From Podarcis muralis (taxonomy: Eukaryota), in the NCBI RefSeq assembly GCF_964188315.1, contig NC_135655.1, positions 73,470,001-73,534,000 of the forward strand: a DNA stretch of 64,000 nucleotides, in the 5' to 3' direction. The position numbers and the translations under genes are program-made. How positions within the stretch are numbered: position 1 is the first letter of the stretch; each line of letters opens with the position of its first letter. The notes below the pieces were generated by a model that did not search any database, had not been told where the DNA came from, and worked only from the letters and a program-made list of their open reading frames with translations. Positions 23,567-62,491 of the stretch are shown one piece after another.

Positions 23567-23735
23567 CATCTCGCATGAACTTTGAAAATTGCACACCGAG
23601 CCCAATGGCAAACCTGACAGATAATGCATCGTCGTGCCCAAATGCCTATGCCAACTGGCTTGTCATAGTCCTCTTAGTCATTTTCCTGCTGGTTACAAAT
23701 GTACTGCTTATGAATCTCTTGATTGCCATGTTCAG
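23567..23735 (+). CDS. TRPM5: TRPM5 exon 19 (pore loop, S6), GC donor
   Basis: [55 protein letters not shown]; ends AG|GCAAGT. Confidence 0.92.
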
Positions 23736-23824
23736 GCAAGTATTTTTTCCCCTGCCTGTTATAAAAAGAGGGAAGCGCATACAACAATCGCTGGTTAAAT
23801 GTACGAACAATAACAGCATAGACA

Positions 23825-23866
23825 TGGTATCTGAAGAAGTGTGCATGCACACGAAAGCTCATACCA
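23825..23866 (+). ncRNA. minimal type I hammerhead ribozyme, core intact
   Basis: stem I TGGTAT/ATACCA; CTGAAGA; extra A; palindromic stem II GTGTGCATGCACAC; GAAA-GC-TC; predicted cut at 23860/23861. Confidence 0.75.
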
Positions 23867-23953
23867 AGAACTAACTTAGTTGGTCTTTAAGGTGCTACTG
23901 GAAGGAATTTTTTTTGTTTTGACTATGGCAGACCAACACGGCTACCCATCTGT
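23826..23953 (+). mobile_element. short Penelope-derived insertion carrying a minimal hammerhead ribozyme
   Basis: TSD agcatagacat(gg) at 23815 and 23954; internal sequence matches the 3' end of the Penelope fragment at 31270-31409. Confidence 0.8.
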
Positions 23954-25391
23954 AGCATAGACATGGACAGTCATTGATGACTGTCTTCATTTTGCACATA
24001 ACGAGTGCAATCCAGAAAAACACCAGAGCCCCATTGGCATATTAAATGATGTGCTTAATTGCCATTGATTTCATTGGAACTTAGAGGCGCCCAACTTTCT
24101 CAGCAGGAGAGTTGTTAATACAGTCAGTGTGATTCACAAGCCATTTAAAATGGGTTTCAGCTGATTTACTTCAGAATGGGCTGGAAAACGTAATTGCTTT
24201 TTCCAACTATAGCCAGAACATGACAAAGAAAGCAATATCTTCATTTCTACTGCAGAATTCAATTAAATATACACCAATTATTTAGAACAGGTGGGAGAGG
24301 GGAAGCTTTCTCTTCGCTACGTGCATATAAAGGGTCTAATACATCAGGGCCCAGTATGGATAAACATCAACACTATTACTCTGTAAAGATTTTAAGACAT
24401 CTGAAGACAATGGGTTCAGGCAACCTATGGGTAGAACACCTATGGAACTTTCCTGAAGGGGACTTTCCTGCGGAAGGAGGACATTTTCACCAATTCCACA
24501 TTTCTTCTATGGTCCATCATTTCCCCTCCCTGAAACCCTGCTCTGGCAGGTGGCTCTGAGGGCTGGAGTGGGGAAACCCAGCAGGGCGGCCCCACAGCTT
24601 CTTGGCCCCTCCCACAAAGGGAAGAAAACCTTCCATATATGAAAAGGCAAGTCTGGATCCAATCCAAACCTTAAATATTTTAAATTGGCACATTTTATAA
24701 TCTTAGTAAGACTGCACACATTTTGTACCTCCCCGTGTGTGTACATGGTGGAATAAAAGTCAAAGTCTTGCCTATTGTAAAGCTGAGTGACAGCCAACCA
24801 AAAACAGAATCATTAAATACAGGCTAAAGTAATCTACAGGTGCTTTATATGAGTTGTCTCCAACTGTAAATGTAGGCACGCAACACATTTGGAAAGACGC
24901 TACTTTAAAAGCCCCTAAATAATGGTTGTGGAATTATTATTATTTTTAAGAGCTGGTTCATGCAGCATTGGGAGATAGTTCTTTGTTGCTTCAGACTCCT
25001 CCTTATATCCCTGCCCAGTTACTGGGATCTTTGGAAGAGTCTCTGTTAATGTTCCATCATGGCTCAGATGGACTGCTTATATACACCAGAAGCTGTGCAT
25101 TCTGTATTTTGGAAGCAATTCTGTGGATCCCCTTCCTGGCTGAGATTAGACCAGGCACCTCCTTGCTGAGCTTCACATTCTTGCCAAAAACCTTTCTATT
25201 CCAGCATCAGCGGGGTATCATAGGGAAAGTTTTCTGTCTTGGACTCATTTTGCTTGATTTTATCCTACCATATATTTTTGTCACCTTCATGTGCATCGTT
25301 AGAAACTTTGGTGATTAAGCGGTATGTAGATGGCTTAAAGAAACAAACATGAGATTTTTATTGATGTGATTCTCCCCCCTCCCTGTTCAAG

Positions 25392-30072: not shown

Positions 30073-30425
30073 AAAGGTAAAGGACCCCTTTACCTCAAAT
30101 GGGTTTGGGGAGCTCATCTTGCTTTCAGGCCGAGGGAGCCGGTATTTGTCCACAGCTTTCCAGGTCATGTGGCCAGCATGACTAAACTGTTTCTGGCGCA
30201 CCAGAACACTGTGACGGAAGCCAGAGTGCACGGAAACGGCGTTTACCTTCCTGCTGCAGTGGTACCTATTTATCTACTTACACTGGCATGCTTTCGAACT
30301 GCTTGGTTGGCAGGAGCTGGGACAGCCCAATGGGAGCTCGCCCCATTGCGGGGATTCAAACACCGACCTTCTGATTGACAAGCCCAAGAGGCTCAGTGGT
30401 TTAGACCACAGTGCCACCCGCATCC
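30073..30425 (-). mobile_element. Sauria SINE (diverged subfamily)
   Basis: aaggtaaagg tail, ggtcatgtggccagcatgact core, B box at ~30352. Confidence 0.85.
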
Positions 30426-30558: not shown

Positions 30559-30986
30559 TGATGGTGTAATGTCCTGCTGTTTGCCCTTGGATAGAAAAAT
30601 GTCTGTTCTGTCTCTTCATGAGATTAATGTGAATCTTTGTGAGATTAATGGATTTCTACTAAATCCAGTGCCTTCCATAGTGACAAATTCCAGAGGGGAA
30701 GCCATGTTAGGCTGCTGAAAAGAAAATACTTTTTTGGTCTTATCATTACTTGGCACACCAGACACTGCAGAGGAAGAATAATTCTAGACAGTGAAGCTAA
30801 AGGCCAGGAAACACAAGAGTCCAGGAAAGTCTGTGACATTTCTGTGCAAAGCTTGCATTTATGCAAGTGACCCGTTCACAGCAGCAGTAACCAAAGATGC
30901 TATCTTCCTAGTTATGCTTATTTTAACACCATCAACCAGAAAGAAACCTTTGCTTCATAAAATAACTACAGGTGTTAACTTAGCAT

Positions 30987-31409
30987 AGACTGGAAAGAGA
31001 AGTGGCTGAATTGCAACTTATTACCGAACTTAAAACCATGGAGAGACCTGGTCTGAATAGAGACATTGGATTTCATTATACATGATAAAGCTATTTTTAG
31101 CCATCTCACCCATTTCTTTTTTCTGTAAGACCAATTGCAGTCATTAACAGTTGTCAACAGGTTTACCACACCTATTAGCCAATCACCCATTCCCACCACC
31201 CTTCTGAGTAATACCCCTCCCCACCCTCTCACTATATATAAGGGTCTGGTGACTTCTGTTTCAGTGTATCTGAAGAAGTGTGCATGCACACGAAAGCTCA
31301 TATCAATAACAAACTTAGTTGGTCTCTAAGGTGCTACTGGAAGGATTTTTTTTTTATTTTTTATTTTGTTTCTACTACAGCAGACCAACACTGCTACCTA
31401 CCTGTAACT
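30987..31409 (+). mobile_element. Penelope-like retroelement 3' fragment (GIY-YIG C-terminus plus pLTR)
   Basis: RLEREVAELQLITELKTMERPGLNRDIGF resembles PLE endonuclease C-termini; followed by a pLTR with hammerhead and ggtgctactggaagg...gctacctacctgtaact end. Confidence 0.75.
31266..31303 (+). ncRNA. minimal type I hammerhead ribozyme, core intact, weak stem I
   Basis: GTAT-CTGAAGA-A-GTGTGCATGCACAC-GAAAGCTC-ATAT; predicted cut at 31299/31300. Confidence 0.7.
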
Positions 31410-31514
31410 ACAAGAAAAATGTCAGACCTTACTCCACCTCTGCATTTCATTATTGTTTCTCCCCAAACTTTCCCCCATCTTGGTCTGTGTGCAAAACTAG
31501 GACAATCCTTTCAT

Positions 31515-31645
31515 GCATCTGATGCAGTAGGCTCTATTCCATGAAAACCTATGCTACAATAAATCTGATGAGTCTTTAAGGTGCTGCAAATTTTTTTCCT
31601 CTTCTTGCTGCTACAGCCTAATCAATCTGCCCAACTGAAACAAAT
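31515..31645 (+). mobile_element. older Penelope pLTR fragment with decayed hammerhead
   Basis: GCAT-CTGATGC-AGTAGG...CCAT-GAAAACCT-ATGC, then aataaatct...gagtctttaaggtgc...gctgctacag. Confidence 0.55.
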
Positions 31646-52942: not shown

Positions 52943-54056
52943 CTTGTGAAATTAAGATTTATTTATTTTTGCCCTGATATGCATTACACTTGTTTACATT
53001 GAATTGCATTTGCCATTTTGCTGCCCATTTGCTGAGTCTGGCGAGATCTGCTTGGAGCTCTTCGCAATCACTTCTTGTTTTAATGACCCTGAACAATTCA
53101 GTATCACCACCAAACTTGGCTACTTTACTGATCACCCCTAATTGTTTATGGACATATTATAAAGCACAGGCCTCAATACCAATAATGGATGGAACAAGTA
53201 AACATCCTGTTATGTGAGCATAGTATTTTGCCATTATGTGTGACCATCAGGAAAACTAAACACAGAGCTAAGGCCACTCAATCAATTCATTTATCTCAAT
53301 CCAAGGTTAGCAGAAGGATGAGTGTGGCCTAAGCATAATATGCCACCTCCTGATGCTCTTTGTACAAAAGCCCAAACTGCTGTCTATAATAATTTAATAG
53401 CCTCTCAAAACAGCTTTCGACCTACCTGTTGCAGTCAAAAAACAAAACACAAAAAACCTGCCCTGTAGCTATAATACTGTAGTAAGCCATTAACTGATGT
53501 ACATCTAATCAAAACAAACACATATTATTAGGAATGTTCAACCCATTCTACGCACACTTTCAACACATGGGGCCATGCTTCCCAGCTGCACCCCTAACAC
53601 TGCATGCTGTGCCTCCTTGAAGCCCATGCATTTGGTGAGATGTTTAAAAAGGGAACCTCAAAAGTGCAGGTTTCCTGGTTGTTTTGAGGGTCTGTGAGCT
53701 TAGGCTTCCTTTTCAAGCATCTTGCTGAAGGCATGGACTTTGGAGAAGGGGTGATGAGTGGGGGCATGCAAGGATAGGGAGTGATGTGACTCCTGCAGTT
53801 CTCTCTCTGTTCTGGCTTTGTTCAAGGAGGGTATTGCTGTACATCGCTATAAACAAATTATTAGTATTACGCTATAGACAAATATTAGTATTTCACAAAA
53901 GATCAGGTGAATGAGTTTTTACCCTTGCAAAGGTAGAACTGTCAATATTATGGTACACATTTATTTATCCTCACTCTGGAATATTCTGCTATGTATGTTG
54001 GTGGAAAGATTAAAGGAATTACTCTTACTATTCAAGAATTCACTGCATAACAATAT

Positions 54057-54199
54057 GGTATCTGAAGAAGTGTGCATGCACATGAAAGCCCATACCAATA
54101 ACTAACTTAGTTGCCCTCTAAGGTGCTACTGGAAGGAATTATTTTATTTTATTTTGTTTCGACTACGGCAGACCAACACGGCTACCTACCTGTAACTAG
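54057..54199 (+). mobile_element. short Penelope-derived insertion with mutated hammerhead
   Basis: TSD aacaatat at 54049 and 54200; GGTAT-CTGAAGA...GAAAGCCC-ATACC (U16.1>C). Confidence 0.8.
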
Positions 54200-54917
54200 A
54201 ACAATATTTTAAAAATATTGTTCTAATGGGGCACTGTGCCTTGGTGCCTAGATCCTGAAGGTGCCTAGCTAGGTATTAGTGAACCAGTACCATTGATGGA
54301 TTTACACTGGCACCTGGTCAAAGGAGCAGGGTCAAAGACTACCATGGCTGTCTGACAGATAAAGGAATGCAGCCAAAACTTGACTACTCTTGAAGCATGT
54401 TCCCAGCAAATCACCAATGCGGCTCTCCAGTGGTTGGAAGAGGATTCCCATCACATTTATGAAAAAACAGCATAGGTCGTCACTTGTTCAGTCCTTAATG
54501 TGAGAAATCAATTCTGGCCCTTCTGCTGCAATAAAGGTTTATTTGGGGAAAGACAGCTTTAGCATTTGTATAGAACATGGGCTGGTTTCGAAGCACACCC
54601 CGCCCCCCGGCCCTCAGAACAAGGTGAGCACCGCTCTCTTGTAGATATTTAAAACAGTTCAAACCTTTCTACTACAGAAAGCTACCTTACGCGCTTAAAC
54701 AAACATGACACGGATCCATTTGTATACCTTAGGCTTAATGAAAGTCCTGGCTCTGGGGTGAAAGGAGTGCAGAAACAACCCTAAAGCTATACTTCATATT
54801 GCAAGCTCAACATGGTGCATTATTCCCCTCCCCCACTCCCAATCAACTGAAGTCTTGCCAGAGATGAAAGGCCCATTCACTGAAGACAATGGGTGTATCA
54901 CACAAACACTTTCTTAC

Positions 54918-62001: not shown

Positions 62002-62491
62002 TTGTATACCACCCCAAATTCCTAACCTAGCTTCACTGTAAAGTTTTGGGAGTAATCACCAGCTCCCTGTGCCAAATTAGATGTTAAAAAGAGGGCCTGG
62101 TCTTATTTTCCTTGCAATGCATCAAATGTAAACTACGTGGAGGTCAACATGCCAGGCATTTCCTCACATCACTGTCTGAGGGGAGGAAGGGAGAGGTCTA
62201 CTATGCTGTCACACCTAGGGGCTGGTACATGAAGAAAAACAAGTAAAGGAATACAAAACAGCCCGGTCATTTATAAATATATTTTTGGGCATCCAGCCTA
62301 ACCTACCCTCAACAAGGGGTTTTGTGAGGAGAAACTACGTCACTTTGCAAACTTAATAGGTTTTGGCCTAGGACACTCATGCCACATAAAAAATGTTGGC
62401 CTTTAAGGTACCATGAGATTCTTTGTCGTGCTGGAAACTTACCGGTTCTGCATAAATATACATTATGAATCCTCCTAATGAATCCCCTTAC

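Follow-up and report, generated by a model that had tools for sequence, protein, structure and literature searches.

What determines the 5′ end of the short hammerhead insertions at this locus, two of which begin at the same base of a Penelope-like element (PLE), and are such insertions elements in their own right or by-products of a longer one? Few ribozyme motifs are as numerous in animal genomes as the solitary minimal hammerhead, which is usually dismissed as a random Penelope truncation; most genomic PLE minimal-hammerhead motifs are single elements, and they have been credited to truncated PLEs without asking where the truncation falls (PMC4209133). For the copies in Podarcis muralis, an earlier reading of the letters (referred to as the sequence-only reading) had proposed either a distinct, non-autonomous ribozyme element mobilized by Penelope or a truncation point that depends on ribozyme structure. 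In the following, the 5′ ends of the short copies are compared with those of long, parental-type copies and with the promoter-like sequence upstream. The window is the whole stretch of DNA that was analysed (64 000 nucleotides), and all positions refer to it.

Material and methods

An HMM was built from the copies and run on the window, which gave four units (two short, one long and one old). Hammerheads were located with a descriptor scan and by folding, direct repeats by repeat search and the TATA box by a motif scan of the window. Long-type DNA outside the window was compared via the proteins P0001–P0012 from public assemblies. The frame used for the 5′ end is an antisense frame that starts at the ATG complementary to the cleavage-site CAT and leads from there back across the ribozyme to the sequence upstream. 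The 12 long-type copies are the long copy of the window, P0002 (phmmer) and P0003–P0012 (word search with the antisense ORF, and cluster members). The comparison of 5′ ends of short forms covers the two short copies and one inferred short arm.

Results

Structure of short copy 1

The coordinates of all features are collected in table 1. An insertion of ~128 nt between direct repeats, consisting of a core-intact minimal hammerhead and a tail, had been described by the sequence-only reading, and sequence, repeat search and descriptor scan agree on it; the insert measures 126 or 128 nt (23826/8–23953) because the final GG of the left TSD overlaps the first two bases of the element. The hammerhead architecture was matched only at 23831 and 31270 in the window and in none of 50 shuffles (descriptor scan), and the 28-nt core pattern was observed three times with 0.00 expected (window pattern count). 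At both positions (23831–23860 and 31270–31299) the core CUGANGA…GAAA is present, and the base at the cleavage site is H and not G. Stems I and II both form in the MFE fold of short copy 1; a duplex dimer through stem II is predicted to be far stronger than a dimer through stem III. The Rfam hammerhead families (types I, II, III, HH9 and HH10) gave no match at the gathering score or at E<=10, as expected because the motif has no helix III hairpin. In architecture the motif is of the Penelope type of minimal hammerhead: the CUGANGA…GAAA core, a helix I of 4–5 bp, one base left unpaired where helix II begins on its 5′ side and the missing helix III loop match the PLE minimal hammerheads (Cervera and de la Pena 2014, PMC4209133), and by analogy with these, only a dimer, or a molecule that receives help, would be expected to be active. 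They differ in that stem II and its loop form a perfect 14-nt palindrome in Podarcis muralis.

Table 1. Positions of the hammerhead units and associated features in the window (1-based; + strand as read).
Feature	Position	Strand	Evidence or remark
Short copy 1: hammerhead and ~90-nt tail	23826–23953	+	sequence; nhmmer E 1.4e-44
Left TSD of short copy 1, AGCATAGACATGG	23815–23827		repeat search, exact 13 nt
Right TSD of short copy 1, AGCATAGACATGG	23954–23966		repeat search, exact 13 nt
Minimal type I hammerhead, short copy 1	23826–23866	+	descriptor scan; folds
Stem I, 5′ strand GGTAT	23826–23830	+	adjoining T at 23825
Core CTGAAGA	23831–23837	+	sequence reading
Unpaired (bulged) A before G10.1	23838	+	sequence reading
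Stem II and loop, GTGTGCATGCACAC	23839–23852	+	5-bp stem, CATG loop
GAAA	23853–23856	+	sequence reading
Palindromic AGCT in the place of stem III, no hairpin	23856–23859	+	sequence reading
C17, predicted cleavage after it	23860	+	sequence reading
Stem I, 3′ strand ATACC(A)	23861–23866	+	sequence reading
Tail stem, GTTGGTCT (23879–23886) pairing with AGACCAAC (23930–23937), T-rich loop	23879–23937	+	MFE and centroid folds
Long parental-type copy, 5′-truncated, 809 nt	30604–31412	+	11-nt TSDs, HMM
TSDs of long copy, AGAAAAATGTC, 11 nt	30593–30603 and 31413–31423		repeat search
ORF end remnant: last 33 codons (…LEREVAELQLITELKTMERPGLNRDIGFHYT) and two stop codons	30984–31088	+	translation, phmmer
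Consensus TATA box TATATAAG (TATAWAAR)	31235–31242	+	motif scan of window
Hammerhead of long copy, stem I 4 bp (GTAT/ATAT)	31266–31304	+	folds, descriptor scan
Old diverged hammerhead and tail unit, related	31515–31641	+	nhmmer E 1e-3, model positions 2–136
Short copy 2: GGTAT start, decayed hammerhead, 3′ end 7–8 nt longer (…CTGTAACTAG)	54057–54199	+	nhmmer E 1.7e-49
TSD of short copy 2, AACAATAT, 8 nt	left 54049–54056, right 54200–54207		repeat search

In the tail, AGACCAAC is the AC-rich 3′ arm of an 8-bp stem that lies just before the 3′ end of the insertion. By analogy with the stem-loop of Poseidon_Ac (PAc) (PMC11167929), this AC-rich stem would be the region in which reverse transcription starts. 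The fold of the element is no stabler than that of shuffles (z −0.39 and +1.26), and the hammerhead alone folds with ~−12.5 kcal/mol. A SINE (pol III) identity was rejected: Rfam gave no tRNA, 7SL or 5S match, and the run of at least eight T inside the unit (23908–23915) would terminate pol III.

The window spans a portion of a TRPM5-like gene, which is encoded on the + strand. An exon of this gene ends near 23735 (translation), and short copy 1 begins 90 nt into the next intron on the sense strand; it is an old intronic insertion, ~4–5% diverged from its source.

Other copies in the window

The two short copies and the long copy are equidistant from each other (~90–91% pairwise identity with 5–7 private changes each, star-like), which fits one master lineage better than a separate short-copy clade. 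The decay of the hammerhead in short copy 2 consists of AGCC (not AGCT) in stem III and a G-T closing pair in stem II. The three copies carry TSDs of 13 (short copy 1), 8 (short copy 2) and 11 nt (long copy), and their 3′ ends fall on two adjacent sites, …CTGT or …CTGTAACTA(G/C), 109–129 nt after the loop-II ATG and just past the 8-bp tail stem; variable 5′ extent, a near-constant 3′ end and TSDs are the marks of PLE insertions. No tandem head-to-tail hammerhead units were found in the window, all copies there being solitary with their own TSDs and unique flanks. For the old unit no TSD was recognizable, and the alignment of its upstream sequence with the pLTR of the long copy did not score above shuffles. 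Two weak nhmmer matches (30689–30726 on the minus strand and 62375–62414) were judged unconvincing as copies. In collections of metagenomes and prokaryote genomes, scans for exact patterns returned nothing, or 19-mer chance matches only.

The ORF remnant of the long copy

Upstream of its ribozyme the long copy carries the frameshifted remnant of an ORF, which closes with two stops at 31083–31088 and ends 180 nt before the ribozyme. With the 33 residues of the ORF end, phmmer against the full library found the short proteins P0001 and P0002 (88 and 85% identity), both matched at the protein C-terminus. The nearest named clusters to the ORF end in the ESM Atlas are eukaryotic GIY-YIG (0.78–0.86), to be taken as a lead only. 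Pfam gave no GIY-YIG match on the ORF remnants or on P0001 and P0002, the 33 residues of the ORF end and the C-terminus of Poseidon_Ac gave no BLASTP alignment, and no RT domain was found in the window. The long copy is classed as parental-type, with a tentative endonuclease (GIY-YIG) identity of its ORF. Protein word searches with the sense pLTR ORF and with the antisense ORF of short copy 1 yielded no candidates, in an index so sparse that blanks mean little.

The shared 5′ end and its non-parental G

Both short copies open with GGTATCTGAAGA directly after their TSDs, and the long copy reads CAGTGTATCTGAAGA. That a second, independent insertion starts with GGTAT while the long copy reads CAGTGTAT had been claimed before and was confirmed at 54057 and at 31262–31269, T31265 being found where the short copies carry G. 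The GG lies within the 13-nt repeat in copy 1 and outside the repeat in copy 2. The earlier view that this 5′ end is not a random truncation is supported by two insertions that have different TSDs and start at the identical base, together with a third, inferred arm that starts 5–6 nt away. This arm belongs to P0006, a head-to-head junction in which the inferred short sense arm starts at ~31260, 5–6 nt further upstream, and is without the extra G; the start points of short copies cluster but are not all identical.

Had the parental consensus itself read GGTAT at this position, the short copies would not differ from it. In all 12 long-type copies the antisense alignment reads …HAHFFRY-T-ETEVTR…; since Thr is encoded by ACN, the sense base equivalent to 31265 is T in 12/12, and the first G is absent from parental DNA. 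T31265 as a private mutation of the long copy of the window was rejected, the same residue being found in 11 external long copies. The antisense ORF of short copy 1 leaves the family sequence right after FFRY. The 5–6 bp stem I that the sequence-only reading had ascribed to the short copies is absent from the long forms, in which stem I has 4 bp (folds, descriptor scan).

A TATA box upstream of the 5′ end

The first T of the TATA box in the long copy is located 30 nt before 31265 and 31 nt before 31266. A TATA-to-start distance of 30–31 nt is canonical in vertebrate core promoters. TATAWAAR has 16 matches on both strands of the 64 kb (~8 per strand), so that the probability of a correctly spaced box on the right strand arising by chance is less than about 1e-3. 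Most external long copies repeat the antisense residues that cover the box (…RPLYIVR…), which is compatible with conservation of the TATA sequence, amino acids not fixing every base. Immediately ahead of the 5′ end stands TTTCAG|T, which could equally be taken for an initiator (A31263) or a 3′ splice site.

Promoters at comparable places are known from other PLEs. The Poseidon_Ac consensus has a TATA-like box ~43–45 nt upstream of the hammerhead core, against 35 nt in Podarcis muralis, and its authors put the promoter in the pLTR (PMC11167929). A transcription start in the pLTR is established for Penelope of D. virilis and for a Chlamys element (PMC8557442, PMC2377424). The promoter of D. virilis Penelope is TATA-less and internal (PMC2377424), and the 3′ boundary of an intron in this element coincides exactly with the start of helix I on its 5′ side (PMC4209133).

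Discussion

Origin of the short units

The reading preferred here, to which a probability of about 0.55 is assigned, is that the short units are leader-only run-off cDNAs of an autonomous PLE mRNA and not a separate family. The TATA box in the pLTR just upstream of the hammerhead would act as promoter and transcription would start at about G31266, giving an RNA that begins with GUAUCUGAAGA… and has the hammerhead first. The PLE reverse transcriptase would start internally, in the AC-rich stem ~110–130 nt past the hammerhead and not at the RNA 3′ end. Where the element is a tandem or partial tandem, its mRNA would contain two such start modules. Use of the downstream one would then yield long, variably truncated copies that include ORF end, TATA box and hammerhead, like the copy at 30604–31412, while priming at the 5′-proximal module would yield a cDNA of ~130–140 nt that reaches the capped 5′ end, where copying of the cap would add one G. 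The expected outcome is a unit that starts with GGTAT…, with a sharp common 5′ end and an accidental fifth base pair in stem I (the extra G with the C of ATACC).

For the PAc enzyme, internal starts 111–118 nt into the unit, after the hammerhead and within a stem-loop rich in AC, were shown in vitro, and a shortened RNA 5′ end gave a shortened product, the ribozyme not being required (PMC11167929). The extra G has a counterpart in LINE-1, where most full-length insertions carry an additional cap-derived G (PMC11702581). We infer for the Podarcis muralis family the use of the TATA box, the start at G31266 and the same mechanism. Given the spacing of the TATA box, the 5′ end is more simply read as the transcription start of the element plus a cap G. 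The PAc RNA template needs sequence up to +172, and inserted copies end at +111–118 (PMC11167929); by analogy, solitary short copies, which are without the region beyond the reverse transcription start, should be dead on arrival and not propagate. Against the run-off origin stand the position of the GG of short copy 1 within the 13-nt repeat, from where it could derive from the target, and the fact that identical letters would result if a separate lineage of short copies had changed T to G. On the same side are the P0006 arm (~31260), which has no extra G, the initiator and splice-site readings of TTTCAG|T, and the intron boundary and TATA-less promoter of D. virilis Penelope.

Other explanations for the 5′ end

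A distinct short-copy lineage is the core of the explanation nearest to the sequence-only reading, a separate retrozyme-like, non-autonomous mini-element of ~130–140 nt in which G at position 1 completes stem I and which Penelope would mobilize in trans. It would pass through tandem arrays or read-through and dimer processing (through the AGCU stem III or the 14-nt stem II palindrome), perhaps with circularization, and would keep its unit length since the reverse transcriptase, on a circle or tandem, would stop at its own starting point. G in both short copies as opposed to T in 12/12 long copies would follow from such a lineage, as would the longer stem I of the short copies, and reptile non-LTR retrozymes have a mean consensus of 176 bp, include many monomers and are related to PLE pLTRs (bioRxiv 10.64898/2026.07.22.740005; PMC7229834). 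The window, however, contains no tandems, each copy lying alone between its own TSDs, and past position 1 there are no diagnostic short-copy changes: six other sites at which the short copies agree look like changes of the long copy itself. One of these, C in the short copies versus T31303, looks private to the long copy, P0006 also having C there (its sense arm encodes …KAHT…, ACN). In addition, the unit carries no promoter, RNA polymerase III would be terminated by the run of T inside it, and inserted copies would, by the PAc analogy, be without the downstream region that binds the reverse transcriptase (+119 to +172). The spacing of the TATA box would be left as an unexplained coincidence. 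With a TATA box 30–31 nt upstream of the 5′ end and copies that, like those of PAc, should be dead on arrival, a distinct non-autonomous ribozyme family has less support than the run-off origin, and we consider it unlikely.

Structure or processing of the RNA could also place the 5′ end where it is, either because the reverse transcriptase drops off at the folded hammerhead or because the RNA ends at the TTTCAG| acceptor. The 5′ end does coincide with the outer end of stem I, a pyrimidine tract with CAG immediately precedes 31265 in the long copy, and the intron of D. virilis Penelope has its 3′ end where helix I starts (PMC4209133). A structural block should, however, halt the enzyme before the structure and not after it, and stems I and II are fully copied; with the whole ribozyme copied and a fold no stabler than shuffles, the structure-dependent truncation point suggested earlier is unlikely. 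Splicing joins exons and leaves no free 5′ end at the acceptor, hammerhead cleavage would leave a 5′ end of ATACCA and not GGTAT, and neither version explains why the G is absent from long copies. This explanation is held to be improbable. Coincidence, that is, two random 5′ truncations at the same base, perhaps aided by microhomology at the junction (…AT/GG), would be in keeping with the heavy and variable 5′ truncation of PLE insertions (PMC8557442), with the GG that copy 1 has in common with its target and with the AT that precedes GG in both targets. The chance of an identical end in two copies is nevertheless estimated at ~1/800 to 1/3000 (for truncations over hundreds to thousands of bases), and chance would also have to account separately for the TATA spacing and for the non-parental G; it is considered a very improbable cause.

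Comparison with known systems

The closest parallel to the Podarcis muralis family is Poseidon_Ac of Anolis carolinensis, which was studied in vitro (Frangieh et al. 2024, PMC11167929) and has the same order of parts: first the ORF end (EN, putative in Podarcis muralis), then a short spacer that holds a TATA-like box, next the minimal hammerhead and last a stretch of ~110–130 nt to an AC-rich stem, at which insertions end. In both hammerheads a single base stays unpaired after A9 and stem III is a palindrome of 4 nt, both elements have AT-rich targets, and in both the 5′ end of the insertion would be set by the 5′ end of the RNA. They belong to different sequence families, their ORF ends giving no BLASTP alignment. 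The start codon of PAc is A9-U-G10.1; the Podarcis muralis family reads A-A-G at that place, with its ATG confined to loop II, and its tail, with a T-run of variable length and in-frame stops, is probably non-coding.

Metazoan non-LTR retrozymes (PMC7229834; bioRxiv 10.64898/2026.07.22.740005) resemble the short copies in being small and non-coding and in having a type I hammerhead, TSDs >4 bp, low GC and kinship to PLE pLTRs, and monomeric offspring has been described for them. They are defined, however, by tandem repeats and circular RNA, while the copies in the window are solitary, and their ribozyme is canonical with a loop–loop contact, while that of the Podarcis muralis copies is of the minimal PLE type. 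With full-length LINE-1 (PMC11702581) the likeness lies in the 5′ junction, where a cDNA that reached the capped RNA end carries a non-templated G; element class and enzyme are different. D. virilis Penelope (PMC2377424, PMC4209133) has a transcription start in the pLTR and a hammerhead near the 5′ end of the transcript, as proposed here, but it has an internal TATA-less promoter and a 75-bp intron that extends to helix I, in place of which Podarcis muralis has an upstream TATA box and only a splice-acceptor-like motif.

Meaning for solitary hammerheads

Penelope hammerheads, their solitary copies, head-to-head arrangements and internal starts of reverse transcription have already been published (PMC4209133, PMC8557442, PMC11167929), as have hammerhead mini-elements that are non-autonomous derivatives of Penelope pLTRs (PMC7229834; bioRxiv 10.64898/2026.07.22.740005). 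In the PLE literature cited here, neither a cap-derived G signature nor a link between a fixed 5′ end, TATA spacing and a non-templated G was found. The short units are most likely by-products of the life cycle of a known retroelement and not a new ribozyme family. If many solitary hammerheads were unit-length cDNAs of a capped leader, this would agree with the run-off seen in vitro, and the natural transcription start would sit right at the ribozyme. The completed stem I would in that case be accidental, a result of cap copying and not of selection, and a fixed 5′ end, an extra G and a length of about 130–140 nt would serve as a signature for annotation. Leader run-off from the 5′-proximal module, marked by the cap G, could even be the general source of the many solitary minimal hammerheads of animals.

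Stem II palindrome and dimerisation

In this hammerhead family, stem II together with its loop (GTGTGCATGCACAC) was found to form a perfect 14-nt palindrome, and cofolding predicted a stem-II duplex dimer at -42 kcal/mol vs 2 × -12.5 kcal/mol for the monomers. Dimeric Penelope hammerheads are usually explained by pairing of the 4-bp AGCU stem III; the stem-II duplex is predicted to be much stronger than this pairing. The window has two hammerheads with an intact core, both on the sense strand and within one TRPM5 pre-mRNA; they are separated by 7.4 kb and might pair or cut.

Coordinates of features in the window
Feature	Position	Strand
Apparent end of TRPM5-like exon	23731-23742	
Core-intact hammerhead, short copy 1	23831	+
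Stem II palindrome, short copy 1	23839-23852	
tRNA-derived lizard SINE copy	about 30200-30420	-
Core-intact hammerhead, long copy	31270	+
Stem II palindrome, long copy	31278-31291	
88-aa ORF, long copy	31278-31544	
Loop-II ATG frame with lost stop, long copy	31284-31412	
Region downstream of long copy	31413-31641	
Old diverged hammerhead and tail unit	31515-31641	

Reading frame from the loop-II ATG

In both short copies (hammerhead and tail insertions), the frame from the loop-II ATG is closed by a stop after 9 codons. This stop is abolished by a T-to-A change private to the long, parental-type copy, and the resulting 88-aa ORF is therefore an accident of that copy.

Head-to-head junctions

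P0002 and P0006, predicted ORFs from public ENA contigs, were read as protein sequences; both are chimeric and join an antisense pLTR/hammerhead translation to sense-strand element sequence, which is the ORF end in P0002 and the hammerhead and tail in P0006. Both are head-to-head Penelope junctions from other loci or species.

Surroundings of the insertions

The younger long copy was inserted ~100 nt upstream of the old diverged unit, and thus two Penelope copies adjoin; directly upstream of the long copy, the SINE was recognised by eye. The apparent end of the TRPM5-like exon reads …TTCAG followed by GCAAGT, which would be a GC-AG intron donor. Another candidate donor GT is located 4 nt downstream and would shift the frame away from the TRPM5 expectation (…AMFS…).
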